A stretch of 64,000 bases of DNA from Epithemia pelagica (Eukaryota; Protista; Bacillariophyta): NCBI GenBank assembly GCA_946965045.2, contig OX337230.1, positions 2,914,001 through 2,978,000 of the forward strand, written 5' to 3'. A program made the position numbers and the translations under genes. A model generated the notes under the pieces. The model saw only the letters and a list, made by a program, of their open reading frames with translations, did not search any database and had not been told where the DNA came from. Below, piece by piece: positions 41,386-61,613 of the stretch. The first letter of the stretch is position 1; every line of letters begins with the position of its first letter.

Positions 41386-42974
41386 TCAACAATTCAACCA
41401 AGGCGTTTGATTATCTTCCACGGGATATCCCCAATACTCCATGGCTTCCTTCATATCAGCACAGGGACTTTCGGCCAAGGGATCTTCGGAAACAAATTTA
41501 CCAGTGACATCCAAGGTATTGTAAAAGTGCACTCGCAGCTCCTCATACAAGCCTTCCTTAGACCGGGGCAATCCTTCGGCAAATTCAATGGCATTGGTCC
41601 GGTCTTTGGCATTGAACAAAATCAAATCTCCCACAGCAACACTCTGGGGATCATCCTTGGTTTCCGTCGCCACGTGCAAGGGACCGGTGGCAATGACACG
41701 TTCGCTGCGAATCAAATATTCCAATTGTTCTTCTTCCAGTGTTTTGGTCACTATGGCAGTGGTGGCCGACGCTAGTTCCACGTCTTCCAGTAAGCCCTTT
41801 TCCATTTCTTGTCGAATCGACGTTGTTCCACCGCTGCTGCTACTAGCGCCACCACCGGCGTGGTCCAGGGCCAAACACATGCACGGATATCCAAACCGAC
41901 CATCGTCAATTCGCAAGGTATAATCGCGAATATGTCGCCATCGATAAAGGGGGATCTGAGACAAATCACCACCCGTCAATTTTTGAATAATGGGTTCCTT
42001 TTGTATAAACTCATGAACATATTCGAGCTTCTTGGATTCCATGCACATTGCATGTCCAACAACACGGCTCAAATCCGAAGACAATCTTTTGTCAAGATGG
42101 TAAAAGGAACAAACGAGACAAAGTGCCAAAAAGCAAGTGTGTTTAATGGGTTTTCGACGCAGGCAAGGCAAACGAAAGGACACAACAAATTCGACAGAAG
42201 ACAATGTGTGAGCGGCAGTGCATCGTTCAGCCCTCGCAGAGAACCACGATTTGCCAACGTCCACAAAGGAAACATATAAATGCTTGAGTAAGCTTGTATG
42301 GTTTGCACGTACATGGGTAGACTCCACAAGACATCGACCATGGATTGAGTATTGAAGGTTTCATTGTACAAATTAGCCTTGCGACAATACATGACATGAT
42401 CTTCAGTCAATTCAATTCGTTGATAAAACAATTCCAAGGTGTCTGTTTCAGGCTCCAACAAACGATCCCACACAAAGGACACAAAGCGATTGCCGGCATT
42501 CTTGGACATGGGAACGGGCGACAATTCCACCGTCGGAGCATTGGCCATGTCATCGTCATCGTTGTCGTCGCCTTCGTCCTCATTGTTACCAAACATGGAA
42601 TTGGAGGAATCGTCATCATCATCCGAATCACCGTCCTTGGAGGAATATTCCGATCCATCGGCCGCAAAGGTGGAAAACAACACGGATACGTGTCGTCGAT
42701 TCGAAATACTGTATGGTCGCAGATATTGGTCTTTGAATAAATTCGTGTTGAAATTCGTTGTGGTTCTGGTGGCTGTGCTTGTCCTCGTGGGTGAGACGGA
42801 GGATTTACCGAAGTATTGGGGTATAGAAATTGCTGTTCTTATACCAAAGGCTTGACAAGGTTCCACCACAAGTAGGCACGATACCACAAAAAGAACACCA
42901 GCCAGGCATGACAAAACGATGACATGGGAGCGTCGGCGAGGCCGTTTCAGATCAATCTGGATCCTTCGTTCCAT
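41386..42974 (-). CDS. Plastid-targeted protein with YciI-like C-terminal domain, 2 exons
   Basis: Leader ending CQA/FG; intron 42312-42086 restores the frame. QLEYL...VIATGPL...VGDLILFNA.DR..AIEFA..LP...GLY resembles YciI/YCII. Confidence 0.65.
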
Positions 42975-43599: not shown

Positions 43600-45693
43600 T
43601 TAGACATTCAAATGCATTGATTCGGATGCAGTGCATGTAGCAAACATCTCAAACTTTCCAGTTAGGAAATAATACATCTTTTTCCTGCACAATGATGCAT
43701 TCGAAAGGTCAAGGTTTTGCTCTGATTCCGTTGTCTTGAACATCCTATTCAAGAAAGCTAGATGGCCAGCTGCTGCAACGCTGCTACAAAGAATCGATGG
43801 GGAAGAGAATGCTATCATTTGCTCTGTGAAAAGCACCTTGTCCGCGACTCTCTTCAAACTTGGCACCCCACTTGTCATGTTCTCCCCAGCAAGCAAGGGC
43901 AATTTGAGGAGTGCGCATCCAGTGACAGCAAGAGTCTTGTCATCGACAGTCACATGATCATCTTTCGTCACAGCAGAGTGTCCAACGTAATCAAGTGTCC
44001 TGCATTCCAGAAGCATCGTTTTGGCATGTTTTCCGTAACTGAAAGATGATATCACATGGGTAATGACAATAATCACACCTCGTCGAACAAGTAGGAGGAC
44101 GATCGCTTCTTTCGCGGACTCGGTACCAAGCACCGAAAGCCAAGTCTGTGCTAGTTGGAGGAGGAGACATGCCCCTAGAAGAGGGACTGAGATTTCCAAT
44201 CGTTTGTCCGCAAGTGCATTTGATCGGAAAATCAACATGAACGAAGCTGCAATCGGATTCAGGACGCTTGCACTGGCAACAAGTGCAGCCCAATTCGATA
44301 CCGGTATCAAATAGATTTCCCAGCTTTGTGCGAACCAATAATGCACCACCTCGTCCGTGAGTACCAGAAACGCAATTATCACGATGTATCTCTTGGTATA
44401 CCACTGCGAGTTCTTCATCATTCCAGCTATCGTTTTGTCTGTATATGAAAACATGATGCTAAATAGTCCCACGAAGCAGCAAATGATTGGGATATACAAT
44501 GATATCCATTTATCATTTTTCGTTGAACCGAATGTGAATGCCAAAAGAACAGCTACAATGCAAATGTAGTTGGTTTTCAGCTCGGGTTCTTGTGGAATGG
44601 ATACGGTAACTGATGGAAGCAACGGCTCATGGGCAAGTTCTGAGGGCTCACCAAGATCTTCCGTATTTGCGTTGTTCGATATGACCACATCACTGTTGCT
44701 CGCTTCTTCGGGAATATCCGCCTCCTTTATCAGTGATTGGAGGATGGCCGCAACCCCAACAAGTAGAATACCAGTAGCGGCAGCTTGCACTGGAGGCCGA
44801 ACTCCAAACATGAGTGCTGGAAAGCAAAGACATTCGACCACTCGGCCCATCTTGAGAGCCCAATACCCAACTGTGGCAGTGGGTTCCAAGTAGAGACGCA
44901 CGCGACTGACAACATGCAGTAAAAATCCAACCGCCAGAGGGATGATTGGATGCCATGTGCATTCCCCAGTGAAAACTGGAATTGCTTGCAACAGTATACC
45001 AACTCCTCCAACCACGAATGAAACAAGGACAGCGGGTTTACTGCCAATTACAACTGGAAGGACTCGTTCTTTTGCCGATCCATCAAAAAGATCCTTGAAC
45101 ACTCCAACAATATTCATGTTGATGTCAATGCAGAAAATTGACAGAGCAGCAATGTACACCATTCGAGGTAGTCCGAAGACGTGATAGCTCTCGTCACCAC
45201 CATTGGTAGTGTTAGCAGGAACAGACACTACAAAGGCCCCATAAAGTGGACACAATGCAAGAGCCGCTGGCATGAGCAAATGATGAATCAATGAAATTTT
45301 CTTGAGGAAGGAGTACCATCTCGTCAGCAAAAACCAAAGAAAAGCCACCAGAGCAGACGAGGGAGAAATGACATAGGAGAGGGCACAAGTCAGTGCACCA
45401 CAGAAAACTCCGTTGACTAAAACAAAGTGAGGAGTGAACTTTCCCGCAGGAATAGGCCGAAATGAAGCATTGGTGGCATCGGTATCTCGATCTTCATAAT
45501 CATTGAATGATTGAATAGCAGTGGTGGCAAAGAATGCCATAATGGTCAGAAAGGCATAGTGCCATGGAGCAAGGTTCTGTTGGTCTTGAGTTGCAATGAA
45601 GGCTCCAACAAGGATAGCGGAAAGAGGAATTGGGAAATTGAAGACTCGGACAAGACTTAACCAAGACATGACGGCATCTTTAGCGGATGACAT
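43600..45693 (-). CDS. UbiA-family prenyltransferase with long C-terminal membrane extension
   Basis: AIQSFNDYEDRDTD (NDxxDxxxD), RPIPAG, second Asp motif FKDLFD...RVLPVVIG. About 9 TM in the first 320 aa, then about 350 extra aa with further TM helices. Confidence 0.88.
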   Translation of the reverse strand: MSSAKDAVMSWLSLVRVFNFPIPLSAILVGAFIATQDQQNLAPWHYAFLTIMAFFATTAIQSFNDYEDRDTDATNASFRPIPAGKFTPHFVLVNGVFCGALTCALSYVISPSSALVAFLWFLLTRWYSFLKKISLIHHLLMPAALALCPLYGAFVVSVPANTTNGGDESYHVFGLPRMVYIAALSIFCIDINMNIVGVFKDLFDGSAKERVLPVVIGSKPAVLVSFVVGGVGILLQAIPVFTGECTWHPIIPLAVGFLLHVVSRVRLYLEPTATVGYWALKMGRVVECLCFPALMFGVRPPVQAAATGILLVGVAAILQSLIKEADIPEEASNSDVVISNNANTEDLGEPSELAHEPLLPSVTVSIPQEPELKTNYICIVAVLLAFTFGSTKNDKWISLYIPIICCFVGLFSIMFSYTDKTIAGMMKNSQWYTKRYIVIIAFLVLTDEVVHYWFAQSWEIYLIPVSNWAALVASASVLNPIAASFMLIFRSNALADKRLEISVPLLGACLLLQLAQTWLSVLGTESAKEAIVLLLVRRGVIIVITHVISSFSYGKHAKTMLLECRTLDYVGHSAVTKDDHVTVDDKTLAVTGCALLKLPLLAGENMTSGVPSLKRVADKVLFTEQMIAFSSPSILCSSVAAAGHLAFLNRMFKTTESEQNLDLSNASLCRKKMYYFLTGKFEMFATCTASESMHLNV

Positions 45694-46646
45694 GATGCGC
45701 TTTTATGACGGGACGGTGGTGGTGGTAGGGTCTTGAGACTGATATTAAGATCTACAGAGTGAATCAGGGCAAGTTCATGAAGTTGCCGAGCGTAGCAACC
45801 GAGACGACCGATACTTGACTAAATGCCCCAGTGCGATTTGGATTATGGTACATGAGGGATAGAATGCTCATTCCGTTTTTCCGGGCAGAACAAAGCGCCA
45901 CTAGCATTGTGAATTGATAATTGAAAACTCATGCATGGCGGCGATGTGGCTCTCCAGTCTCCATTTGTTAGTCCAGTAAGGTTCTAGACGGGTTCGAGGT
46001 TCGAGGCTCGAGTCCACGTCAATTATCAGAATTATTATTACACAATGCTATGAATGCTATGGCGCCTTGTCCGGGTGTCGGTGTCCCATGTCCCTGCCGA
46101 TGACGTCAGAGGGTGTGTCGATTCGCGTCAATATTATTGTGGATTGTGGAAATAGTCTTCCTTCATCAATGAACTTGACGAAAACCAGGAAATCATCTCC
46201 TACATGACGACGTCGTTTCTATGGTAGACGTGAATACGAAGAATTGGCTCTTTCTCTTCTCTCTCATTCTATTTGAAGATGTGCCCTGTTGGTAATTGGC
46301 AAACCCTTTGAGATCGCATCTCGCATCAAGTGTCAAGTGCTTTTGCATCCATCTCACTGTTGAAACGAAGACAATGGGCAAAGAGGGATTCCTTCATTCC
46401 CGAGTGTCGTAGCCAGATGGCCACATCTCCGTCACTCTAGTGACGTCGCACATGGCCAGGCCTATGAGTCATATGCGCAGGCCCTGATGTACGGAAAGGC
46501 AAATGACCCTTCCCTTTCCAGGGCCTCTCCTCGTGCTCATTCTTCGTAGCTAATCGATAAGGAAGTTGTTCTTCAAACAAGCGCGTTTTGCGTTGCATCA
46601 TTTGCACGCAACCTCTGTTGCTTTCACACTCACCGCAGAAGTAAAT

Positions 46647-47978
46647 ATGCCGTTCTCATCACACAACGATCAGAACTCAACTACTCCTAATAACATGAAA
46701 AATCAACGCGCTTGCATACCCTTTCCTCTCGGAGGAGGAGTCAAGATTGTCGGTGCCCCTTCGGCTTCTTTCCAGAGAACGAATTCACACAGGAAGAAGT
46801 TGGACTGATGCTTGGTGTGAAGAATGAAAAAGTGTGGAAACTTCTTCGATGCAAGCATATTCGTACCAGAAGACTTCTTGCTTTGAAACATCCTGTTCCT
46901 GGGTCTTCCTCATCATGTGGTGTGTCAGCCCCAAACGCTGTGACGCGACAAGAACTCTTCCACGAAGGCTTCCAAACATTTGGGATGGACGCCGTCCTCA
47001 ACGCACTCTCGGAAGCTCACATGATGGCCAGTCAGATCGACATAATAGCCAGTGTGACGAGTACAGGACTAGCTCTTCCGGGACTGTCTGCCATGCTGAT
47101 GCGAAGAATACCGTTCAAGAGAGATACACAACGAACGGACATTGTTGGTATGGGTTGCAATGCTGGACTAAGTGGCCACAATGATGTTGCAAAGTCTGGC
47201 CAGATCTAGAAATAGATCTTGCTTCGGTTTGCTACTTTGTTTCGAAACAAACAGTACTATGTTCGTCTCTGGGGACACCACAGGCAACGGCATTGTAAAT
47301 TCACTTTTTGGTGATGGTGCTGTGGCCCTCATCTTGGAAGCTACACCTGATGACAAGGACATTACACCAAGCATTGGCTCGCAACCAAGCCACGTACCTA
47401 CTACCCCTTCTCCGAGTATCTGGCTGTCTGACTTTGAGTCCTACACTTTACCGGAGTACTTTGAAGACATGCTCTATGCCGTGGATGCGGAATCAAAGCT
47501 GCAGCATTTTTTGCTCAGCAAGCGGATTCCAATGGCTATGGGTGAAAGTGCTTGTCTACCAGTGCGGAAACTGCTGGCACGTCATGGATTGGAGCCAACG
47601 GATGTGGACCACTGGGTATCTCATGCTGGGGGAGCCAAGGTTATGGAGCTTGTTGCCCAAGGACTCGGCATCAATGTCGAAGGTCACATGCGGCACACAC
47701 TCAGTGTGATGCGGGACTACGGAAATCTCTCGAGTGGCTCCTTTCTGGTCAGCCTGAAACGGCTGTTTGAGGAACATGATCGGATTGGGAACATGACTCA
47801 TGGGGATAAAATGATCCTTCTCTCTATGGGCCCCGGGGCAACCATTGAAGTGGCTTTTGCAGTTGTCGATGGAAACGAAGGGAACGGGCCATCATTTCGA
47901 CGACATGGCATGAATGCTCACCCAATTGGCAGTCAAAAGCAGGTACTGGAATCCGAGAGATACCATCGAACTAGTTAG
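46647..47978 (+). CDS. Type III polyketide synthase, DpgA-like; two compensating frameshifts in this sequence
   Basis: VKIVG...FTQEEV, VTSTGLALPGLSA, RTDIVGMGCNAGL (Cys), VNSLFGDGA, HWVSHAGGAKV (His), RDYGNLSSGSFL (Asn), MGPGATIE. Frame breaks at about 46769-46771 and 47174-47177. No introns. Confidence 0.88.
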
Positions 47979-48058
47979 ACCAAACATTTGGTACAAGCAT
48001 AATGTACTCCAATCTCCTTGGAGTACTCCTATGTTATACTCAGGGTTAACGCCATTCG

Positions 48059-48118
48059 TAAGCGAGTAGCGTATAGCTGTCTCCCATATAAGCGAGACAG
48101 CTATACGCTACTCGCTTA
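48059..48118. repeat. Left subterminal palindrome of piggyBac (25-bp perfect arms, 10-nt loop)
   Basis: taagcgagtagcgtatagctgtctc (48059-48083) / gagacagctatacgctactcgctta (48094-48118). Confidence 0.95.
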
Positions 48119-49187
48119 ACTTCGACTTTCATTAACTTCATCAAAAACCAAATTCTGTCAAATCTGACTTCTTCGTTGGAAAGATCTTGAAATTCTGAAT
48201 AACTTCATTTATGGTAGTCTACAGTAAATACACAGTCATTAGCGTGATATTTCGCTTTGAAAAATTGACGATTTTCCTCAATTTTGTTCATTTCGATCAT
48301 CCTTCGCCCATGGCCCAACTTTGTACTCTTATACATATCTACCATTTGGGCCAATCGTTGCAGGATTCTCCATTCCGACGGTCCATATAGTGAAGAAGAC
48401 GTCCACGAAAGGCAATGTCGTCTGCAGTTGTACCTACGGAGAACGACGATCACGAGTCCTCACAGCAGAATTCGTCACAGTCACTCCTCGATGAAGATAC
48501 TGATCAACCCGTCGCACCTCGAGCCCATACCTATCCAGATTCTTCCCAACCTATTGGTAGAGATCATCACCAACCTCATGTTGACAATGATCAAGATGAT
48601 GCTGTCGCTATTTCTGCATCACCACAACCAATAGCGAATGCGGATGGCGAGCCACCCGTCGATGCTGAGCGACCTGTTCCACCTCCACCTCCACACCCTG
48701 TCGGAAATATTGCACAAGGACAAGAAACAAATACCGAGACACAAGAACTATTACCCGAAGGGGAAAGTCTTCCGGCCCATTTGCCCGAACGAGGTCAATC
48801 CACTAAGCCACGTTCCCGATTTAGCTACTCGAAACGGTATCTCGTCTCACCTGACGATTTTTGGATTCATCCAAACTTCCACGAGGAATTTTGTCGTCGC
48901 TTTCGTCCCAACCCTACAAACCGTCCTATAAATCTCGTTGGGAAAATTGCAGAGTGTCCTACGAAGAAGAATGGAAATGTATATTCCATTGTATGGGACA
49001 ATTCAACACTCTCATCTCTCGAGGTTCCACAGAATTGGATCAAATCTCAATTCACCTCCAACTCGACAGTAAAAGACAAACTTTGTCAATGTATTCAAGA
49101 ATACAACCCAAGTCAACATGGCCAGGGAAACCAACCATCTCAAACACAACAATCGCAACAAACAAGCCAGTTGCAAACGCACCAACC

Positions 49188-49945
49188 TGATAAACTTCTC
49201 TCGATTCAACAGGGGTTAGACAGGTAGGTAGGATAGGTAAAAGGCTCGCTGAGCCAACAATCGAATCACCAACCGATACAACAATCCTCCACGGGTCAGA
49301 GAAGAGTTGCAAGTCGAAGTCCGCCGTGGGTGGGGGCAGTCGGTCCACTGATAAGAGGTTAGTCTTAAGATGAGTGTTAAAATGGTGATATTAATGATTG
49401 TGAGACGATTACTAACTAAGGTGGTTGATGGTGCCGAAGTCCTGGCTCTTGTATACGGCCATGGATCTGGTGTGATAGGTCCTCACTGGTTGGAGTAGAC
49501 CGGCATTGGTGTATATTGAATGTATAGGGTGATGGATAACATGTATGGGATGCAACAGCTCTTGCTTTGTCGTGGTATAAGTCTTGTCCTGGGCACGTTG
49601 CTGTTTGCATTCTTGGATTTGTGGGAACAGAGATATGGTCTCGCGTGATCGTGATTCGTGCTTTGATTACATAGACCGTTAGGTCGAATCGTGGATGCGC
49701 GTACTCGGATAGTAGAGGCGCGCACTTGATAGTTTTGGGCGCGCAGGTGTTGGGCCATAGTTAATATCCGAGCGGTCGCCGATAACGCGTGCAATGCGAG
49801 CATGCCGTGGCCAAATTTATACTTCCGCGAGCATGCCGACATTCTTTTCTCACTTTTAGGAAAATGTCATCGGATGCCATAAAATACTAGCATCATTCGA
49901 TGAGTTGTAGGTTTCGCCACCTAGTTTTCGGTGAGAATCCTAACA
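49188..49945 (-). repeat. 3' LTR (758 bp)
   Basis: TGTTAGG...TTTATCA on the minus strand; two substitutions versus the 5' LTR seen by eye. Confidence 0.97.
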
Positions 49946-52900
49946 CTCCCCACAATTCGTCGAATGAGGATTGTCAATTCCCTCATCACTTTCCTGGATT
50001 TTTCCTCTCCAGAATAACAAAGATCTGAGCATGGGCCAAACTGCGGCGAATTCCCAATGTTTACTGAGGATATCAGCTGGGTTTGTCTTTCCATCTTTCC
50101 AGTAGAATGCGACGTACTTTGCAGCGATAGCTTCACGGACTCGGTGATAGGATAGGAGATGGTGCCTCTTGGAGATGATTGAGTGTGGTGTGGTGCTATT
50201 GATAACGACAGAGCGGTTATCTCCAAACATGTAACTCTTCTCTCGCAGAGGGACTCCCAAGTATTGGAGTGTAAGGCGTAGCTCCGTGATCTGATCAACT
50301 GCAGTCCTTGCGGCAACAAATTCAGATCCATACGTGGCTGTTTCCACTGTGGCTTGTCGCTTACTGTACCAGTCCACGGGTGTACCATTTACAAAATGCA
50401 GGATGGCTGTAACTGCTTTCCCAGTAACCATATCATGCATGAGATTTGCGTCGACATAATGTATAGTTGTCACAAAACGCCCAAGTGGGGTTGGACAGTC
50501 CTCAGGGATACGTTCCTTGGCGTCCATGTATACGGTACGACTCCAATCGTATTCTTGGATAGGTAAAGCTGATAAATCTGGCTCCCCAGTGCGGAATCTG
50601 ATAGACCCATCAGGAAATGACATGAGGTATCCATAGATGCGTTTAGCTCGCTTCAAATGACCAATCCTTGGAGCGGCTCTGAACCTTGATAGAGTCATGG
50701 TAGCAGGAAAGACATCAAAACGGCCAATGGTAATTAGCCATTGCAGTTGTCCAATAAGAGTCTGGAAATGCTGGGTCCCTTCTTCATCTAAGAGCTCAGA
50801 GTCATTGAGTTCAGGATGATTGTTAGCAATGACTGGCGGCTTTGCTTTCTTGGGTTTCTCATTGAACAATCGTTCATAGGTATCCATCATCTTCTCGATG
50901 TACTTTCGTGGGTCAGACACAAGTGTACCGTCTGGATCTTTGGTATAACGACACCCCAAATGATACTCGATAGGTCCGACTCCTTTGAGTTTGAAGTTGT
51001 ATTTTTCTGTAAAGATCTTGCAGACAGCTTCAGGGTCCATGGCAACGATAGCTAAGTCATCAACATATACAGCGATATATTCATAACAGTCTTCTCCAGG
51101 AGCCTTCTTCATCCAAATATCAGGGTCAGCCTTGCTTGGAGAAAATCCCATATCAATGAGAACATCAAACAGTTTGTCATGCCAGCGAGCACCTGAGGAT
51201 TTGAGACCATATAATGCCTTGTAGATGATCAAGATATGTCCTTCTAACTCCTTGAACTCTGGTCCTGCAATGATGAAAATCTTCTCTCCTGTCAATGCTT
51301 CTAGGTATGCGTTCCCAATATCTGCTCCCCATATTTCCATGTCGTTCATGGTTCCAAGAAATATGGCAATGCGAAGGTTGCGAATGGAGACAACCCCTGA
51401 ATAGATGGTCTCAATGGGTTCCTTGGTGAGATGTCCATCTGCGACAAGTCGTGCCTTGTGCCTTCCGTCATGCTTGACATCAAAGACCAGATGTACTCTT
51501 ATCTTATGATATCCTTCTGGTGCATTGGCCAATTTCCCATTAATGAACTTGGCTTTTCCATGGTCCTTGAAAGTGTTATACGATTGGATCTGTGAGAGTT
51601 CCAATTCTGTTGCGTCTTGCCATTTCGTGTTCCCAAATTGCTTGTCTAGTTCCACTGCTTCTTCATAGGTGCGAGGTACTTGGAAACCAAACTTGTACTT
51701 GATAGAGCGACGAACTTGTTTGATCCTGGATTGTTTAGCTGCTCGAATGAGTCTTTTGCTCGTCTTGAAGTATCGCTTGAGATGTTTCCATCCAGGTAGA
51801 TCCAGCAAACCATTTTTCTTGGCATAGATGGCGACTGTGATGGGGTCATCATTTGCAATAAGAGATAGAGGTTCGTATGTCGTCTCCCCAGTCTCCCAAT
51901 CAACAAGGACATTATCTTTACTCCCTTTATAGTCTGGGTCGCTTGAGTTCAAAGGTCCTTGGTGTGCAATAACGTCTCTGAATCGGAAGAGACTATCCCC
52001 TGTCGTTTGGGCTTGATTATCCCTTTCAATGTATTCCATGAGCTGGTTGTAGGAGATCATCTCATCAACATTGGAGTTAGACTTGCGAAAGATATATTTG
52101 AGTCGATCTTCTTGTTTGGTTGCATCTTGTTCCAGGTCGACAACTCGTTTGATTACTCGTGCTCGGTGGCGCTCCCCATTCTCTTCAGTGTCACAAAGGA
52201 ATGTGCGTCCAACTAAATCGTCGTAGTCAATTGTTGGCATAGGTGTGGATGGGTCTTCACTTCTGCTGCGAATAAAGACAGTGTCACCTTGCTTGTCAGT
52301 GGGTTTATGCGGCGACTCCTCCCCTGAAGAGATATCCACACGAAGGTTGGGGGTAGTGGAGGCAACGCGACGGACAGCGGAACGGTAGATGATGACGTTG
52401 TCGGCAGTGAGGATCTTCCAAGTAAAGGCATCACCAACATTGTGGGCAAAACCAACCCAGTGGCCAATCTTCTCGTCGGGAGACGAAGGGTAAGAACCGG
52501 ATGTAGGTTCAGAAGGGTCGACACGATAGTAGACCTCATCCCAGAAAGGAAAGAAAAGGAGATGGGTAATGTCGGGTGGGGTACCGGTAAGAGCCTCAAG
52601 AGGGGTGCGGCCAGAGTGGGTGGGAGAGGAAGTGTGATTGAGGAGGTCACACACATATTCTAAACAAAGTAACCATGCAGAAGCAGGGCAACCAGAGGCA
52701 TTCATGATAGCATTGGTCATACGCTTAACGGTCTGGTAGCGGTTCTCAGCTTTGTTCTGGTGTTGATGATAGGGCTCGGAACGGTATTCACCAATCAGAA
52801 GGGTGCGAAGAATATCCTTGACCTTGTGGGAAATAAGTGACGAACCACCATCACTGATCAAAGTCTCCATGACACCACGTGTACGAATGTTATCCTGGAG

Positions 52901-55621
52901 GGTATTGACGAATTGCTTGGTAGACTTGATACCATAAATGTCAGTAACCAAAGTATCACGACCAACAAAAATCTGAGCAATCTTGCCACCATGGTTAACA
53001 GCCGGGGTGTCGGAGAAGATGGAGTCAGTGGCAACGGGTTCATGCCGTCGTGGTAGGTTAAGGATAGGATTCCGGGCCTTAAAGTGTTTCTTCAAGGTAT
53101 CCTGGTCAAAGGAAATGTGTCCATGACGAGTTGTATGCTTGAACGTATCGGCGATTACGTCTTCCGATTGCCACCCAAAGAAAGGGCGAAATTTCTTCCA
53201 GTCGTATTGTTCCTTGTAGAGTTTGTGGACAGACGCATGAAGTGTGGGGTCGTTGCCATGTTGATCAGCATAGATGGAAAAGAAGGAAGGTGTATCGGGA
53301 CCATGATCATATGGGAGATCAAGGAGGAGATTCAAAGTGCATACAACGCGATCGGTATACTCCCCATATTGGTCATAGGGGTACGTTTCCATACTACCAT
53401 CAGTCTCCACAGATGTCCAGTTCGGTGCAGGGTCTTGATGGGGGTCTGGATGGGTATGGTCAAGTACAGAAGGATCCCAGATATGGGGTGAAGTGAACAC
53501 AATATGCGGATATTTATCCATATCGTCATCAGAAGGGATTCCCAGAGATTGAATGTATGCAAGGCCATCCTTGATTCGTAAGGGCAATGCACGTCCATCA
53601 AGGGTAGTAATGCGTTGTTTGCCATCAACCTTGACGGATCGTTCGTCGACAGATAGGCCGAAATGTTCAAATTGCGCTGGGGCATGGATAGATAAACCCT
53701 TTCCATAGTGGGCATACTCATTGAAGATACCAATAATGGGTCCATCACTTGTATCAAACTTGGCAGCACAGGTAACAACTGGAAGGCCAGTCAATTCATG
53801 ATTGTCAATACCTACGATGGTAATATGACGTCCGGTTTTGGCAAGGATACGCATGTCAGATCCTGCAAGGCCTCCATTGGCACCTCGATCGATGAGTTGA
53901 TTACCAGAAAAGGTGGATTTACGGGAGAATAGATATCGTGACATATGAACCTTTTGCTTGTGATCAGCAGAAGACTTGAACTTGACTTTAGGACTTGACT
54001 TTGTCGTAGAAGTTGACAAGATGTTGCTGAGGTCAGATGCTGGATGATTGATATCTGTCGATGCAATAGCCTGGTGTACGAACTGGGTAACCGGATCAGA
54101 GGATGTATCGAATGGATCTTGTTCTGGTGCATCTTGATGGGTATCATCGATGTTGGTGGCATCAGGATCAGGGTCCGGTTCAGGATCAATGTCAAGAGAA
54201 TGTGTTTGGACCTTGCGTGGAGTTGTCGGGGAATCTTGGACGGATTTATTGAAGTCGACAATGATTTGCCGATCCTCTTCAGAGAGTTTAAACCATACAT
54301 CCCTTGGAAGGCTGATTTTCGACGAAGTTGGGGACTTTTCGGATTGGATATTCGTGTTGTTGATCTGGTAGTCAGGGGGCTCCACTGGTTCAAAAGGTTC
54401 ATCCAACTGAAATTCATGTTGCTTTACATGACGACGGCGGTTAGACGCAGAAGTTCGGGTAGCTTGGTCATGGTCAAAAGCAGCATCAAGAAGCAGGCGG
54501 AAATATGATTGATAACAGAGAGACTTGGCTCCAGATTTTGTGTTGACAACGTTATCCAAGATCTTGACTCGTCTTAAATCAGGTACCTTTTCAACAGCTT
54601 GCATAAGGAAGGTCATCCTTGTATGGTCATGGATACGATCCGACAGTGGTACAAGGTTATCCAGAAGTCGTAGCTGTTCTTGAAAATGTAGGAGAAACTG
54701 ACGAGTTGTACCACGCCAAGAGTCATCCAGTCGAAGATTCGAAATGTAGCTTGTTAGGCGTAACACTTCTCGCTTAGCTAGATCAGATTCAGTGTGTAGA
54801 ACATGGAGTTTCTTCAAGACGGCTCTTGCATCTTCATCATGTTCATGTTCTCGAACATATGCTCTTCCTTGGTCGGTTTGGATAATACGTACAAGTACAG
54901 AATAGACAAAGACTTGTTGTTCTCGGAAAAGTAACTCTGCGCATTCGTCATCCTTGGGTACCTTGTAATCGAAATCAAGAACATTCGACAATCCTTGTGC
55001 TTTCGCAGTTGATTTGAATACACGCCAAAACGAATCAAAGTATCGTTCGTCTTTGAATGATTCAAATGCTGTTGCATCTCTTTTGGTTCCTTTCTTGAAA
55101 GCAGAGAGATCTAACATGGATTGAGATGTTGTAGAGGATGTAGTGGGAGATCGGGATGATACGGAGTGTGCAGGTGATTTCAGAGGAGAAACTGGGTCTT
55201 GGTTCATACCAGACTTGGTAAAGTCGGTGTTGATCCTCCAATCGTCATATTGGTCCCTCGTGAGGTTCATCCATGTAGCACGGGGTAGTTTTCCATGTTG
55301 GAGTTGCCGTTGTTGTAGTAACCAATATGCCATTAGTTTGAGTTGTAATCTTGTACTTGTCTGTAGGTCGTTGACTTGTTTTCCAACCTTGTATTGCATG
55401 AGATCCTTGAGTGTCTCCTCGGGATCAGTTGCAACATGGTCGAGGACATGAAGGATATGTTCAAAACCATGATGTCGCATCCACTTTTGAAGTGATTGGG
55501 CTCGTTCATCATTACAACCAAAGATGCCTTTAGTTATATGGTCGAAGAGATCTTGGTTGGTTATATGACTTGACTTGTCCTCAGGAGGAGTAAACGGTGT
55601 CTTGGGTGATTGAGGATCCAT
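49940..55621 (-). CDS. Copia gag-pol polyprotein (protease, integrase, RT, RNase H)
   Basis: 1893-aa uninterrupted ORF: IDRGANGG (protease), ATDSIF / ISDGG / AENRY (integrase), ADIGNAYL / YVDD (RT), YVDANL / EFVA / GDN / ADILSK (RNase H). Confidence 0.97.
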   Translation of the reverse strand: MDPQSPKTPFTPPEDKSSHITNQDLFDHITKGIFGCNDERAQSLQKWMRHHGFEHILHVLDHVATDPEETLKDLMQYKVGKQVNDLQTSTRLQLKLMAYWLLQQRQLQHGKLPRATWMNLTRDQYDDWRINTDFTKSGMNQDPVSPLKSPAHSVSSRSPTTSSTTSQSMLDLSAFKKGTKRDATAFESFKDERYFDSFWRVFKSTAKAQGLSNVLDFDYKVPKDDECAELLFREQQVFVYSVLVRIIQTDQGRAYVREHEHDEDARAVLKKLHVLHTESDLAKREVLRLTSYISNLRLDDSWRGTTRQFLLHFQEQLRLLDNLVPLSDRIHDHTRMTFLMQAVEKVPDLRRVKILDNVVNTKSGAKSLCYQSYFRLLLDAAFDHDQATRTSASNRRRHVKQHEFQLDEPFEPVEPPDYQINNTNIQSEKSPTSSKISLPRDVWFKLSEEDRQIIVDFNKSVQDSPTTPRKVQTHSLDIDPEPDPDPDATNIDDTHQDAPEQDPFDTSSDPVTQFVHQAIASTDINHPASDLSNILSTSTTKSSPKVKFKSSADHKQKVHMSRYLFSRKSTFSGNQLIDRGANGGLAGSDMRILAKTGRHITIVGIDNHELTGLPVVTCAAKFDTSDGPIIGIFNEYAHYGKGLSIHAPAQFEHFGLSVDERSVKVDGKQRITTLDGRALPLRIKDGLAYIQSLGIPSDDDMDKYPHIVFTSPHIWDPSVLDHTHPDPHQDPAPNWTSVETDGSMETYPYDQYGEYTDRVVCTLNLLLDLPYDHGPDTPSFFSIYADQHGNDPTLHASVHKLYKEQYDWKKFRPFFGWQSEDVIADTFKHTTRHGHISFDQDTLKKHFKARNPILNLPRRHEPVATDSIFSDTPAVNHGGKIAQIFVGRDTLVTDIYGIKSTKQFVNTLQDNIRTRGVMETLISDGGSSLISHKVKDILRTLLIGEYRSEPYHQHQNKAENRYQTVKRMTNAIMNASGCPASAWLLCLEYVCDLLNHTSSPTHSGRTPLEALTGTPPDITHLLFFPFWDEVYYRVDPSEPTSGSYPSSPDEKIGHWVGFAHNVGDAFTWKILTADNVIIYRSAVRRVASTTPNLRVDISSGEESPHKPTDKQGDTVFIRSRSEDPSTPMPTIDYDDLVGRTFLCDTEENGERHRARVIKRVVDLEQDATKQEDRLKYIFRKSNSNVDEMISYNQLMEYIERDNQAQTTGDSLFRFRDVIAHQGPLNSSDPDYKGSKDNVLVDWETGETTYEPLSLIANDDPITVAIYAKKNGLLDLPGWKHLKRYFKTSKRLIRAAKQSRIKQVRRSIKYKFGFQVPRTYEEAVELDKQFGNTKWQDATELELSQIQSYNTFKDHGKAKFINGKLANAPEGYHKIRVHLVFDVKHDGRHKARLVADGHLTKEPIETIYSGVVSIRNLRIAIFLGTMNDMEIWGADIGNAYLEALTGEKIFIIAGPEFKELEGHILIIYKALYGLKSSGARWHDKLFDVLIDMGFSPSKADPDIWMKKAPGEDCYEYIAVYVDDLAIVAMDPEAVCKIFTEKYNFKLKGVGPIEYHLGCRYTKDPDGTLVSDPRKYIEKMMDTYERLFNEKPKKAKPPVIANNHPELNDSELLDEEGTQHFQTLIGQLQWLITIGRFDVFPATMTLSRFRAAPRIGHLKRAKRIYGYLMSFPDGSIRFRTGEPDLSALPIQEYDWSRTVYMDAKERIPEDCPTPLGRFVTTIHYVDANLMHDMVTGKAVTAILHFVNGTPVDWYSKRQATVETATYGSEFVAARTAVDQITELRLTLQYLGVPLREKSYMFGDNRSVVINSTTPHSIISKRHHLLSYHRVREAIAAKYVAFYWKDGKTNPADILSKHWEFAAVWPMLRSLLFWRGKIQESDEGIDNPHSTNCGEC

Positions 55622-55935
55622 GGTGTTATTTGGTTGGTTCGATGTTTATTTAATGTGCGGTGTGATGTGGTTTATTTAATGTGTGATGTGATGTGAACCC
55701 GGATGTACCACGTGTGCCACGTATGTACCACGTATGTGATACCCGGATGTGTGTTGTGATGTGCGACTCCTGGAAATTTCCGTTGATTCCGACAAATTTT
55801 CGCCGAGTTTCAACAAATTTTCGCCGAATTTTCGCGATTTGACGGGAATGTGTGGCGTGTTGTGCGACCAAGGGTACCCGGATGTGCGGAACTCGGTTTT
55901 GTGCCTGGTTTGGTGTAGAAACTACGTAAAGTTAC

Positions 55936-56691
55936 TTATTCTTGGTCACTTTCGGCTCGGTACTGAAGACGAGATGCGGAATCGGTCACTGTAGTGGCTA
56001 GTTCTTCAACGTCGTCGTCTTCCAACAAGTGGTTCACGTGTTGAGTGAAGAGAGGGTAGATAGTCGCACGGAAATCCTGGCAGAGATGGATCTCGTGAAC
56101 AAAGGAGACGTACTCGTCGAGACGAGTAGTCGGGGTAGGTAGCGGATTCGTCGTTGAGTTGACGATCCAGATGGTGTGGAAGTAGTTGGTTGGACGTTCA
56201 AAGGAGATGAATCGGATACGGATGGGTTCCACAGGGTTGCCCAACAGGGCTTGGACAATGAAACGGCGTCTCGAGCACTGGTACAAGAGGTCGAGAAGTC
56301 GTTGGATGTCCTCAAGGTCAGTCACGGGTTGGACGGACTGGAAATCGATCTCGCGTTCGGTTGTGGAACGGATCACGTCGGGGTCGGTAGTCGACTCAGA
56401 CGGCTCGCGGAAGTGTCGGATATGCGCAGTAAGAAGACGGCTCGTACGTCGGGTGCGAGTAGGGTTCAAACGGCGAGGCGGAGTCGAAGGGTGAGTCGGA
56501 ATCGAAGGAGGCTGGACCACTTGGTCCGGGGTCTGGAAGGGATTCGGAGCACTGGCCTGAGTCGGGGTCTGTTTAGGAGTTTCAATCAAGGGCTCGCCCG
56601 GATGGGACACGGGTGGATGGAGTTCCTCCCCGCTTTGCTGGAAGGAATGAAAGATGTGTCGAATAGAGAGGTTGGAATCGTCGTGAGACAT
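55936..56691 (-). CDS. Extra ORF in the Copia 5' leader (251 aa, unknown)
   Basis: ATG at 56691, between the PBS and gag, same strand. Pro/Thr-rich N-half and globular-looking C-half. Confidence 0.55.
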   Translation of the reverse strand: MSHDDSNLSIRHIFHSFQQSGEELHPPVSHPGEPLIETPKQTPTQASAPNPFQTPDQVVQPPSIPTHPSTPPRRLNPTRTRRTSRLLTAHIRHFREPSESTTDPDVIRSTTEREIDFQSVQPVTDLEDIQRLLDLLYQCSRRRFIVQALLGNPVEPIRIRFISFERPTNYFHTIWIVNSTTNPLPTPTTRLDEYVSFVHEIHLCQDFRATIYPLFTQHVNHLLEDDDVEELATTVTDSASRLQYRAESDQE

Positions 56692-56715
56692 CGAAAGCTT
56701 CTCGGAAATAAACGA

Positions 56716-56729
56716 TGAGACTGTTAATC
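56716..56729 (-). promoter_or_regulatory. Putative primer-binding site complementary to a tRNA-Asn(GUU) anticodon arm
   Basis: Plus strand TGAGA-CTGTTAA-TC abuts the LTR and has the form 5-bp stem, C-U-GUU-A-A loop, start of the complementary stem. Confidence 0.6.
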
Positions 56730-57487
56730 TGATAAACTTCTCTCGATTCAACAGGGGTTAGACAGGTAGGTAGGATAGGTAAAAGGCTCGCTGAGCCGAC
56801 AATCGAATCACCAACCGATACAACAATCCTCCACGGGTCAGAGAAGAGTTGCAAGTCGAAGTCCGCCGTGGGTGGGGGCAGTCGGTCCACTGATAAGAGG
56901 TTAGTCTTAAGATGAGTGTTAAAATGGTGATATTAATGATTGTGAGACGATTACTAACTAAGGTGGTTGATGGTGCCGAAGTCCTGGCTCTTGTATACGG
57001 CCATGGATCTGGTGTGATAGGTCCTCACTGGTTGGAGTAGACCGGCATTGGTGTATATTGAATGTATAGGGTGATGGATAACATGTATGGGATGCAACAG
57101 CTCTTGCTTTGTCGTGGTATAAGTCTTGTCCTGGGCACGTTGCTGTTTGCATTCTTGGATTTGTGGGAACAGAGATATGGTCTCGCGTGATCGTGATTCG
57201 TGCTTTGATTACATAGACCGTTAGGTCGAATCGTGGATGCGCGTACTCGGATAGTAGAGGCGCGCACTTGATAGTTTTGGGCGCGCACGTGTTGGGCCAT
57301 AGTTAATATCCGAGCGGTCGCCGATAACGCGTGCAATGCGAGCATGCCGTGGCCAAATTTATACTTCCGCGAGCATGCCGACATTCTTTTCTCACTTTTA
57401 GGAAAATGTCATCGGATGCCATAAAATACTAGCATCATTCGATGAGTTGTAGGTTTCGCCACCTAGTTTTCGGTGAGAATCCTAACA
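56730..57487 (-). repeat. 5' LTR (758 bp)
   Basis: Near-identical to 49188-49945. Confidence 0.97.
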
Positions 57488-60238
57488 CAACCAAACCCAA
57501 CTTCTGTGGTGGCGACTCAACAGAACAATTCTACGAACAACAACAATGCACAACCTCCTGTTGTTCAGCGTCGCGGATCAACACAACAGCCTCCACCTCC
57601 TTCCACAGCAGAGCGCGCACGACACCGAGCCGCAATCAGGAATGTTCCGGAATCTTCTCTTAGACGCTCTCCTCGCCGTCATTCTCGTCGCAGCTCAACA
57701 TCCAACCCGCCATCCACTCAAGAAAGAGCCCAAGGGCGGGCAGCTCTAATGACTGCTCCTAACGGCGGCCCTTCTCCATCAGAAAATGGGAACGATGAAA
57801 ACAACGATACTCCAACCACCCAAGTTCCAACCCGTCTTTTCGGCAGTACAAGTACTTCTGTCTCTACAAGAGCTACGGCAGCTGCACGGCGACAGCGTCG
57901 ACAGGAAGAAAACACAGAAGACGATGCATCAGAGAATGGGGAAGATTCTTCGTCTGACGAGGACGACAATGGTGGGTATGAACTGGATTTCAATGCCACA
58001 GTTGATAGGAATGTCGATCCCTTAGATGACTATGACGACAATGATGACAATAATGAAGACGAAGAAAATGTTGTCCAAAGCGACGACTCGGAATCAACAG
58101 ACGACGACGATGATCCCAACAATTCAACAAATCTGAAAGTGCTCATAGACAATCTACAATGGCACTACCGGACCGTTGGTCAGTCAGACAGTGTTTTCGA
58201 CTGGGTGGGACAAGAACGACACCATCGATCGATGTTTCGAGGAAGTGACGGGTTGAAGGCCGGTGTTGCAAATTCGTTCAATACTCCCTTTGATTGTTTG
58301 CGCAATGTTGGTGGACTTTCGAAGTCTCTGATTTCGGACATGGCAGCAGCAACCAATCGTTACTTCCATCAAAAAATCCGTCCTAAGCTCATGGGTCGGC
58401 GTGGTTATAATCACTCACAGAAGTGGAAGGATGTCACTATCCAAGAAATGACAAGGTTTCTTGGTATCATCTTGATGATGTCGTTGAGACCACTCGACAG
58501 TGGTGGTTATGCATCCTATTTCAACACCTCCAATCGAATGTACAGTCTTGGCACTGCCATCCCATCGGTAGAAATTCTCGACAGTACCGGCTGGGCGTCT
58601 AAGTACATGCGTTTGGCTCGGTTTCGCCAAATAAGGGGAGCCTTCCATCCCGAATCAAAAGGCGCCGCACGTGGGGGGGACAAATGTTACCAATTGCGTA
58701 AACTTATACAGGCAGTCAATGCAGCTTCGAAGAGGTCTTTTATCATTCCTCAAGATCTTTCGTTTGATGAAGGTGGAATTGGTTGTCGGTCTAGATACTG
58801 TCCAGTGCGTCAGTACAACAAGGACAAACCTGCCAAATTCCGAGTTGATTTCTTTATTTTGGCGTCGTCTACAAGTTACGCCATTTTACACATGGATGTG
58901 TATCAAGGCAAAAATGCCACGAACTCCTACATCAGGCATGAAGCACGGCGCCTTCCTACTACGATGAAGGCTGTTGTTAACGCTTGCTACGCGTTGGAGC
59001 TAAACAAGGAGACCAATGGCTTCAGGCATTTGTCTATGGATAATAGATATGCGGCACCACAACTTCTTGTGATTCTACGAGATCGCCTCAAAGTTCTTGC
59101 CACCGGAACAGTACGAGTCAACAGGGTCGGTTGGAGCAAATCACTGATGAATCTGAAAAAAACAAAAACCAACCGAGGCACAATGAAGCTTGCACATGAC
59201 AAAGTGAATGGTGTTATCATTGGACAATGGGTTGACTCCAAAGTTGTCAACTTTGTGTCAACATACGAGAACATTGGTACCGGACAAGTGCAACGTCAAG
59301 TGGGCCCAAACAAGGAAAGCTTCAACTGCCCACAAATGCTGATTCGATACCAGACTAACATGGGTGGAATCGACAATGGTGACCAAATGAGGTGCCATAT
59401 GGGCGGTTTTGCCACCCATGTCCACTTCAAGAAATGGTACAAGAAAGCCGGTCTGGGGATCATGGACATCATGCTACTGAATTCGTTCATTGCATGGAAC
59501 ATGTCCGCTGGTGACAGGGTACGGTCCAGACGCACGAAGCTATCAAGGCACGAGTTCTACACAGTCGTCGCTCAGGAGATGTGCAGTTATGTGCATGCAG
59601 ACGAAGTTGATGCATTGGCTCGACGGACTGGAGTACAGAGAAACACCGCATGCGAGGATGGTCACTACCCCGTTCCCATTGATACTTCGAAACGGATGGG
59701 ATGTGCCGTTTGTTTGTTGGAGCATCGGTGGAAACGTAAGGAGATTGGAATGAAAGGTCTGTTTTCAAATGTAGGCCAATGTGCCAAGTGCGGAATTGTG
59801 GCACACCTGGTGACATGTAAGGACGACCGGGAGGATGGATGGAAAATTCATAAGCTACCACAATTCGCGAACCATACTTGCTTTGAAATCCTCCATTCGA
59901 CACATGGCAGGGAAATGTTTATGTGTCGTTCGACAAGTGGCGAGGATGGCAGATACAAGTACACAACAAAAAAAAACCACCCTTTTGTAATGGCCTTGCG
60001 AGAAAAGCATGGTTTGTCCCCAGAATACACAAGGAAAAGACGACGCAGTACTGGCAGTGAAAACATGCAAGAGGACAATGAGGAAGCCAATGACAACAAC
60101 GGAAACGAGAACGACAACAACGACGACACTGAAAGCAATGAAGACGAAACCACCGATATCCATGAACTGTAAAGACCATACTAATCTAAGTAAAGAAGAG
60201 AGCATTTCGTAGTTCACAGTACATGTTTAGTAGGCTAT

Positions 60239-60869
60239 TTAGGCATCGCCATCAGTGGGAGCAGGTCGGAAACCCACATACTGTTCATCCGTGTTTTCAT
60301 TTGGAAAGTTTTCACGGACGAAATCTACCAAACAATCCGGCAGTGGAACTCGGTTGCCACGTCCAAGGGGACCGTGAAGCTTATTCGACAAGCGCCGATA
60401 TAGCTGGTATCGAATTGCACGGTTCGACTCACCTTTGTTTCTGAGATGCATGGCGATTTCATGAATGTAGCTAAGGTGTTCGACAACAACGCAAGGGTTT
60501 TGCTGGCAGATAGAGCACACGTTTTCCCAGTACATGTATCCATGCGATTTTGTGCGCGGCATGTTGTTGTTTAGCTCGTAGAGAATCTTCTCGATGCTTT
60601 CCGGGCAAGCATATTCAATGGGAATGTACCTTGTTTCGGTAGCTTCAGAAGTCTCGTCGATGACTATTCCCTGTTCCCCAGTTACCAACACTTGCGATTT
60701 CTTGAGGGTAAAGGGAACCATCACGCCACTGCGTGGTACACTGTTGTCGTCGAGGGTCGACTCTGCGATTTCGACGGAATCAATGAGATCTGCGAAACAA
60801 GGTGAGGTGAGAATGAAGAAAAAGGACTTCACTGACTGAATTCTTGAAAGAAAAGAACTCACCGTCCAT
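60239..60869 (-). CDS. piggyBac accessory gene with CxxC and KolX/P2X7-ballast-like motif (185 aa, 2 exons)
   Basis: ATG 60869, intron 60862-60790 (GTGAGT...CAG). CSICQQNPC...NRAIRYQLYR...LHGPLGRGNRVPLPDCLVDFVRENFP...YVGF. Lies inside the TIRs, convergent with the transposase. Confidence 0.7.
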
Positions 60870-60998
60870 GATCTTCTGATAGGATGTTGTAGATTGATCG
60901 TAGCCTTCAATGAATGAGGGATGAATGAGGGGAAAAAAAGATACTGTGGTCATTGCTTAACACGGTTCTGTTAGTGTTTTAAGGAGGGAGACAACTAA

Positions 60999-61054
60999 GC
61001 GAGTAGCACGTTGTCTCCCATAAACTTTATGGGAGACAACTATATGCTACTCGC
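60999..61054. repeat. Right subterminal palindrome of piggyBac
   Basis: gttgtctcccataaa (61010-61024) / tttatgggagacaac (61026-61040), flanked by gcgagtagca / tgctactcgc; homologous to the left palindrome. Confidence 0.92.
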
Positions 61055-61613
61055 ATAAGCTTAACACCCGTTCTTTACGAATGGCGTTAAGCTAGACTAT
61101 CCGTATTCATCTGATGTGTTATTTTCGGCTAGTAGGAGTAGTACTCCTAGAGATAATAGAATCTCTGTCGTGAATCTACATACCGATCACCGACCCGACT
61201 CACGACCAAGACCAGAATCCAACGGAAACGGACGCAGACACGAATGTCATTGCATGGGTACACATACACATAGATACGAGTACGAGTATTGTTTGTAGTA
61301 CTGGTAAATACGTACTCGTACTCGCAATGACAGGTTGCTTCTTTGGCGCACTGACACGCATGCCGCGCTTCTGTCACATCGGGTGTCCACGGAAAGACAC
61401 ATCAGACATTTTCGCGACCGATCGGCACACACATCATCTCCACATGCATTCTCGTCCAATTGTTTTTCCAGACACTCCTTATTGAAATTGAATCTCCTGA
61501 GGCTCAAGTCTTGGCCTCATTCTTTGACGGACTCATAGGGTCAAGAGAGCCGGGAGAGGGAGAGAGTCTGAATTCTGCGCTCTGCTTTGTCTTCACTTTG
61601 AAGCCATTGGACC

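Follow-up and report, generated by a model that had tools for sequence, protein, structure and literature searches.

A type III polyketide synthase pseudogene beside a UbiA prenyltransferase fusion in Epithemia pelagica: probable remnant of a bacterial-type biosynthetic module

We analysed a stretch of 64,000 nucleotides from the diatom Epithemia pelagica (GenBank assembly GCA_946965045.2, contig OX337230.1, positions 2,914,001 to 2,978,000 of the forward strand), hereafter called the window; all coordinates count from its first letter. Two genes stand head to head between 43600 and 47978. The one on the minus strand is an open reading frame (ORF) whose product joins a membrane prenyltransferase domain of the UbiA family to a second membrane domain, here named X (UbiA::X). 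The one on the plus strand is a type III polyketide synthase (PKS) gene, broken by two deletions. An earlier note, made from the letters alone, had read the pair as an active cluster for a prenylated resorcinol-type compound, with a DpgA-like PKS and a possible origin by horizontal transfer. In the following, the window contig (ctg1314l) is haplotype A, and ctg1347l, locus L005, is haplotype B; both are found in ENA ERZ21939226. The features of the locus are these:

43600..45693, minus strand: UbiA::X, an uninterrupted ORF of 697 residues, with the Pfam UbiA match at residues 25-266
44689..45693, minus strand: UbiA domain, residues 1-335, with both Asp-rich motifs and identity to bacterial and metagenome proteins
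43603..44613, minus strand: domain X, residues 361-697, with six predicted long helices and a helical C-terminal part
45694..46646, no strand: divergent intergenic region of 953 bp, taken from the sequence
46647..46768, plus strand: PKS segment 1, frame 0, up to a 1-nt deletion within a T-run
46772..47176, plus strand: PKS segment 2, frame 2, with Pfam Chal_sti_synt_N, the Cys codon at 47156-47158 and an 11-nt deletion at its end
47181..47978, plus strand: PKS segment 3, frame 0, with Pfam Chal_sti_synt_C, the His codon at 47622-47624 and the Asn codon at 47724-47726
47452..47457, no strand: site of the copia insertion in the PKS of haplotype B, with 6 bp duplicated and matches to the window on both flanks
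48050..61085, no strand: block of 13 kb without counterpart in haplotype B, holding a copia element and a piggyBac-like transposase

With the PKS start codon at 46647, the divergent spacer measures 953 bp from ATG to ATG, in agreement with the earlier estimate of about 950 bp. The description of two intronless genes holds for the uninterrupted UbiA ORF; it understated the damage to the PKS, which is not one open gene and is split over three frames by deletions. The base composition of the locus is similar to that of the rest of the window.

The first PKS lesion was located by alignment at 46768/9, where the window lacks one T of haplotype B (a run of three T versus four); it leads to a stop at 46806-46808. 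At the second, after 47176, the window lacks 11 nt that are present in haplotype B and in the public run X2. Since the two losses sum to 12 nt, the last segment is back in the first frame, whereas the stretch between them, about 135 codons, is read out of frame. Introns were considered as the cause of the frame changes and rejected: haplotype B has the letters missing here, and the residues they encode align with the orthologues, so that the changes are lesions. Haplotype B is broken differently, by a 1-nt deletion of its own at window position 46836 and by a copia insertion at 47452-47457, the matches to window 46270-47457 and 47452-48049 flanking about 6.4 kb of copia sequence in L005. The haplotype B contig aligns with the window over 46270-48049 at 98-99.7% identity, then jumps from 48049 to 61086 at 99.7% identity and runs on to 64000; because of this continuation we take ctg1347l to be the other haplotype of the locus. 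Upstream of 46270, haplotype B is unrelated to the window over at least 5.3 kb.

Public sequencing runs show the same variation. A contig of run X1, which may come from the same sample as the source of the window assembly, equals window 46595-47457 with zero differences; run X3 holds both T-run lengths, and runs X2 and X3 show the alternative allele states. No intact PKS copy of the species was found in the protein collection, in which exact look-ups return only the two broken loci. The PKS does not form one continuous reading frame, with two frame-breaking deletions in the window and different breaks in haplotype B. It is a pseudogene on both haplotypes, and present-day activity of the pair finds no support.

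The UbiA::X alleles vary as well. In P0175, the allele on the haplotype B contig, the first 11 residues are swapped for 13 unrelated ones and the last ~50 are missing. A third allele or copy, P0174, also lacks the C-terminal ~50 residues; it lies on a third contig (1,726,739 bp), from which the protein collection holds no PKS fragment. The only complete UbiA::X allele is that of the window, the tail of which aligns with homologues. Loose ends at 45658 in public runs would fit an insertion at that position.

The PKS segments match Pfam PF00195 (Chal_sti_synt_N) with a score of 32.4 and PF02797 (Chal_sti_synt_C) with 44.7, both above the gathering score of 27. The Cys-His-Asn triad is present, as the earlier note had it: the three catalytic residues align with those of the solved Pks11 and THNS (1u0m), and they are kept in all relatives. 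The closest relatives are 50-54% identical and include Seminavis robusta Sro194_g082740, and a PKS of Licmophora paradoxa (44% identical) falls inside the same clade. Bacterial-type relatives come next at 40-46% identity, some of them named DpgA by NCBI. Both a 106-row tree and a careful 58-row tree place the PKS inside a eukaryote-like clade of 13 rows (support 100/100), which is nested among bacterial and metagenomic rows; a separate, well-supported clade holds the named DpgA enzymes. A sister-group PKS, P0024, has a clearly bacterial gene context, which fits an old bacterial origin of the PKS.

The assignment to DpgA does not survive these comparisons. The NCBIfam DpgA model NF042429 is indeed the best-scoring model for the PKS. 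Its cut-off is 425 bits and a true DpgA (P0078) scores 642, versus 74 and 158 bits for the window pieces and 224-290 for the intact orthologues. In an approximately unbiased (AU) test, forcing the DpgA and PKS groups together costs 124 log-likelihood units (p 6.8e-69), the group tested having been named after the first tree had been viewed. The DpgA motifs that the earlier note had listed are all present, and they (GMGCNAG, VNSLFGDG, RDYGNLSSGSF) are common to DpgA and non-DpgA clades, being shared across the whole superclade. DpgB, DpgC or DpgD partners did not emerge either: no crotonase-like or dioxygenase-like domains occur in the larger ORFs (at least 150 residues) between 29 and 63 kb. 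DpgA orthology was therefore rejected on the low model scores, the separate clades and the AU test, and by all these measures of sequence the PKS is not a DpgA orthologue and lies outside the DpgA clade. As a separate matter, a PDB search gave many weak matches to transcription activator-like (TAL) effector repeats at 47560-47660, around the catalytic His. Their E-values, down to 1.9e-14, sum weak stretches, and the match looks like a chance resemblance to the TALE repeat consensus.

The UbiA domain matches Pfam PF01040 at residues 25-266 with 86.3 bits versus a cut-off of 34.2, and residues 1-335 are 39-47% identical to bacterial and metagenome proteins of 294-346 residues. The Asp-rich motifs NDYEDxxxD and DxNMN...KDxxD...E are invariant in an alignment of the subfamily, the invariant residues being N64, D65, D68, D72, D190, K200, D201 and E209. 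The NCBIfam models of housekeeping enzymes (4-HB polyprenyltransferase, MqnP, chlorophyll synthase and DGGGP synthase) all score far below their cut-offs, the best of them being DGGGP synthase with 69.8 bits versus 296. With no housekeeping model near its cut-off, the domain stays outside the Coq2, MenA and chlorophyll synthase types, grouping with which would have counted against the reading of the earlier note, and belongs to a rare UbiA subfamily.

The whole protein is a fusion of this rare UbiA subfamily with the unannotated membrane domain X. Full-length homologues of 680-701 residues occur in Seminavis robusta and in another diatom-like assembly, and only four full-length relatives were found: Seminavis Sro366_g127560, two further sequences and P0125. 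The last is a variant fusion whose sulfotransferase domain precedes UbiA. All five eukaryote-like fusions fall into one clade of the UbiA tree (100/100), grouped with UbiA proteins from bacterial operons at 100/99. P0125, on an ENA contig of 20,429 bp, belongs to the same UbiA clade and carries its N-terminal sulfotransferase in place of X. In Paractinoplanes lichenicola (L028) a sulfotransferase adjoins a related PKS and is followed by a cytochrome-b5 desaturase. The sulfotransferases at these two loci hint at products that may be sulfated.

Domain X matched no Pfam family at E-values up to 10, and had only 17 matches among 1.84 billion representative sequences. Three of these look spurious and were set aside, namely two Ig/fn3-repeat proteins (P0149, P0151) and one tiny fragment. 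An AlphaFold model of the domain has a predicted local distance difference (pLDDT) score of 79.6 and a predicted template modelling (pTM) score of 0.80. Invariant positions of X include R178, E264, Q265, S271 and H284, counted from the start of the domain. Its fold found no match in four libraries (Foldseek on PDB and on AFDB clusters, the Atlas shape search and VIA-align), the best VIA-align (wide) hit having Z 4.0 and the best Atlas feature score being 0.89, below the trust level. The green alga Cymbomonas tetramitiformis has an annotated stand-alone homologue of X, P0153 (KAK3248646.1), which shows that the domain is not confined to diatoms and bacteria. Two further proteins, P0136 (a short UbiA of the L019 group described below) and P0144 (a stand-alone X), are both recorded on ENA contigs whose length is exactly 7,529 bp. 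Probably this is one and the same contig, which would make a second UbiA/X cluster. Domain X could serve as a tailoring enzyme or an exporter, or could provide a docking site for the PKS.

The clearest link between the genes comes from bacteria. In the loci L012-14, L018 (Enhygromyxa salina) and L019 (a metagenome-assembled genome of Verrucomicrobiales), the gene for a UbiA relative has a type III PKS gene directly behind it, only a few bases away. Metagenome contigs, too, are among the sources of such operons. The operon UbiA orthologues are 42-47% identical to the window UbiA domain, and at four to five independent bacterial loci the nearest UbiA relatives immediately precede a type III PKS. 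The PKS that comes after UbiA in L022 and L023 shares 37-38% identity with the diatom type. The L019 operon has a third, overlapping gene for a membrane protein of 306 residues, homologous to residues 424-653 of the window protein (E ~4e-20 to 5e-19) and scored at 400 bits by the X profile; domain X is 33% identical to this stand-alone gene. With an X gene behind UbiA and PKS in L019, the diatom-like UbiA::X is thus two operon partners fused into one protein. The X profile found no X in the operons L012, L018, L022 and L023, and a metagenome scan for further UbiA loci gave only five short contigs. Another UbiA relative has no PKS within 8 kb. The locus L010:1-17005, with a UbiA relative of its own, holds genes for a polyprenyl synthase, three aminotransferases, inositol-1-phosphate synthase, an AP-endonuclease-2/TIM-barrel protein (PF01261) and SCP2 proteins; it adjoins a squalene-hopene cyclase.

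Since the same gene set exists in bacterial operons, the pairing looks functional in origin, and it is plausible that the two genes belong together, as had been proposed: bacterial loci join UbiA to PKS, and the third operon gene is fused to UbiA in the diatom-like proteins. A bacterial origin by horizontal transfer, likewise proposed before, is plausible for both genes in view of the PKS and UbiA trees and the bacterial context of P0024. The linkage is partly kept in other eukaryotes. The genes are adjacent here and lie about 100 kb apart on one contig of a second diatom-like assembly; in Seminavis they are unlinked. The three diatom-like genomes that carry UbiA::X all hold a member of this PKS clade.

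Evidence on expression comes from the public run X4, which derives from a different sample. Its contigs are collinear with and gapless on 43768-45848, at a depth of about 10; the depth is 0 in all bins of 45972-48300, that is, in the intergenic region to the right of 45972 and over the whole PKS. No library type is recorded for this run, and contigs are evidence of presence, not of absence. The pattern probably reflects RNA: UbiA would then have a transcript without introns, and the PKS none that is detectable. As the contigs reach 45848, the 5' untranslated region of UbiA would be at least 155 nt long. The co-expression that had been expected of the pair finds no support, the only probable RNA run covering UbiA and not the PKS.

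Besides a copia element and a piggyBac-like transposase, the neighbours scanned comprise a kinase and ORFs without annotation. Within the scope given above, the larger ORFs around the pair hold no tailoring domains, be they of the methyltransferase, hydroxylase, crotonase or another type. The copia-type retrotransposon, at 49184-57488, is missing from haplotype B and has an intact ORF for a polyprotein of 1893 residues (49940-55621) with RVT_2. A near-identical copy (98-99%) lies inside the haplotype B PKS at L005:3638-10047, so that the element was active recently. The piggyBac-like transposase ORF (DDE_Tnp_1_7) is at 57473-60172. The 3' neighbour of UbiA, at 41386-42974 on the minus strand, is split over two overlapping ORFs by an intron or a frameshift. 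It ends in a borderline YCII-like domain and was considered as a possible cyclase partner, but rejected, the match being weak (23.9 bits versus a cut-off of 24) and the gene not standing beside UbiA in the other loci.

We consider it rather probable that the locus is an eroding remnant of a bacterial-type PKS/UbiA/X biosynthetic module. In the ancestral module, a soluble type III PKS would make a phenolic polyketide, which the membrane UbiA enzyme would prenylate; the product of the PKS would thus be the substrate of UbiA. The module would have been acquired from bacteria; in diatom-like genomes UbiA is fused to the second membrane domain, X. The pathway would no longer run from this locus in E. 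pelagica, and the UbiA::X gene of the window haplotype would still be intact and transcribed. A wider proposal, which we put forward tentatively and would not yet favour over its denial, is that UbiA, type III PKS and X make up an undescribed three-part pathway to prenylated phenolic lipids, occurring in Verrucomicrobiota, in Myxococcota and, with UbiA and X fused, in a few pennate diatoms. X might then be a membrane enzyme of new fold or a coupling subunit, and the pathway would be in the course of being lost in the window.

Several observations weigh against a remnant module. The PKS genes of L012, L018 and L019 belong to a distant subfamily, only 21-26% identical to the diatom PKS, which is therefore not an orthologue of the PKS of those operons. 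P0024, the closest bacterial PKS relative whose context was read, is a solitary PKS, and the UbiA relative of L010 sits in a cluster without PKS. The Seminavis PKS and UbiA genes are on different contigs, and no UbiA was found within 8-10 kb of two other eukaryote-like PKS loci. The unrecorded library type of run X4 counts here too, since its contigs cannot prove the PKS transcript absent. Finally, a UbiA::X gene that stays intact while the PKS decays also fits an independent function.

One rival holds that the two genes are chance or historical neighbours, with UbiA::X using another substrate and the PKS being an unrelated gene on its way out. It would account for the unlinked genes of Seminavis, for an intact and apparently transcribed UbiA::X beside a dead PKS, for a diatom PKS clade that differs from the PKS of the operons with the closest UbiA, and for the UbiA relative in a cluster without PKS. 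It would leave unexplained why a type III PKS accompanies this rare UbiA subfamily at four to five independent bacterial loci, at two of them a diatom-like PKS, why the genes are adjacent here and linked over 100 kb in another assembly, and why all three diatom-like genomes with UbiA::X contain the PKS clade. On this balance we regard the rival as unlikely.

An active two-gene cluster, in which a DpgA-like enzyme and UbiA make a prenylated resorcinol-type compound from a shared bidirectional promoter, is far less credible. The head-to-head arrangement across 953 bp, the kept catalytic residues, the first rank of DpgA among the NCBIfam models and the existence of bacterial UbiA-PKS operons all suit it. 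They are outweighed by the two frameshifts and early stop, the broken second haplotype, the lack of PKS signal in the probable RNA run X4, DpgA scores far below cut-off with rejection of a shared clade (AU test, p 7e-69 when rounded), and the lack of DpgB/C/D-like or other tailoring genes among the neighbours scanned. This reading is largely refuted for the present genome, and no product, resorcinol-type or other, can be inferred from the locus. That the frameshifts are assembly errors in a PKS intact in the organism is hardly believable: one lesion does fall in a short T-run, a typical error site, but a run X1 contig (possibly from the assembly's own sample) matches 46595-47457 without differences, an 11-nt deletion and a retrotransposon insertion are atypical of sequencing errors, and both allele states are seen in public runs.

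The structure of the bacterial operons and the gene fusion give this PKS clade a concrete and testable set of partners, in which the PKS is joined by UbiA and the orphan membrane domain X. The locus itself is riddled with transposons. With the PKS dead on both haplotypes, a frame-repaired copy would test ancestral and not current activity; intact versions exist in the Verrucomicrobiales operon (L019:7929-10994) and in Seminavis, as Sro194_g082740 with Sro366_g127560. Of most interest is the orphan domain X, along with the evidence from operons and fusion that connects it with UbiA and PKS.

Among known systems, the plant cannabinoid route is one in which the product of a tetraketide synthase is prenylated by a membrane aromatic prenyltransferase of UbiA type; the plant genes are not known to be clustered like the pair described here and would belong to unrelated subfamilies. 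PKS1 of Ectocarpus (PDB 4b0n) is, like the window PKS, a type III PKS of a stramenopile alga and is thought to be derived from bacteria, but its match to the window PKS is distant (E 2e-12, with the C-terminal piece). Diatom type III PKS have been reported in silico only, with neither products nor clusters described (PMC7284882, PMC8329260); in these reports on diatom PKS, the paper on Nitzschia inconspicua states that no cluster was recognised. We found no description of a UbiA-PKS-X operon in the literature. DpgA, the 3,5-dihydroxyphenylacetyl-CoA synthase of glycopeptide clusters, shares with the window PKS the bacterial-type superclade, about 40% identity and several motifs. The window PKS differs from it in scoring far below the NF042429 cut-off, in its separate clade and in the lack of DpgB/C/D partners among the neighbours scanned. 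Of the known systems, the Agq cluster of Actinoplanes missouriensis comes closest; it reportedly goes back to a study by Awakawa et al. in 2011. As two articles describe it, the cluster encodes the type III PKS AgqA and the UbiA-like prenyltransferase AgqD, and its alkylresorcinols are prenylated (PMC7587189, PMC10896814); the former article also mentions a similar gene set around losA in Micromonospora (PMC7587189). The present locus differs in that no hydroxylase or methyltransferase domains occur among the neighbours scanned, X is fused to the UbiA domain, the genes belong to a eukaryote and the PKS gene is no longer intact, being a pseudogene. Compared by description, the two have in common a type III PKS gene adjacent to a gene for a membrane prenyltransferase of the UbiA family, here in divergent orientation across 953 bp.

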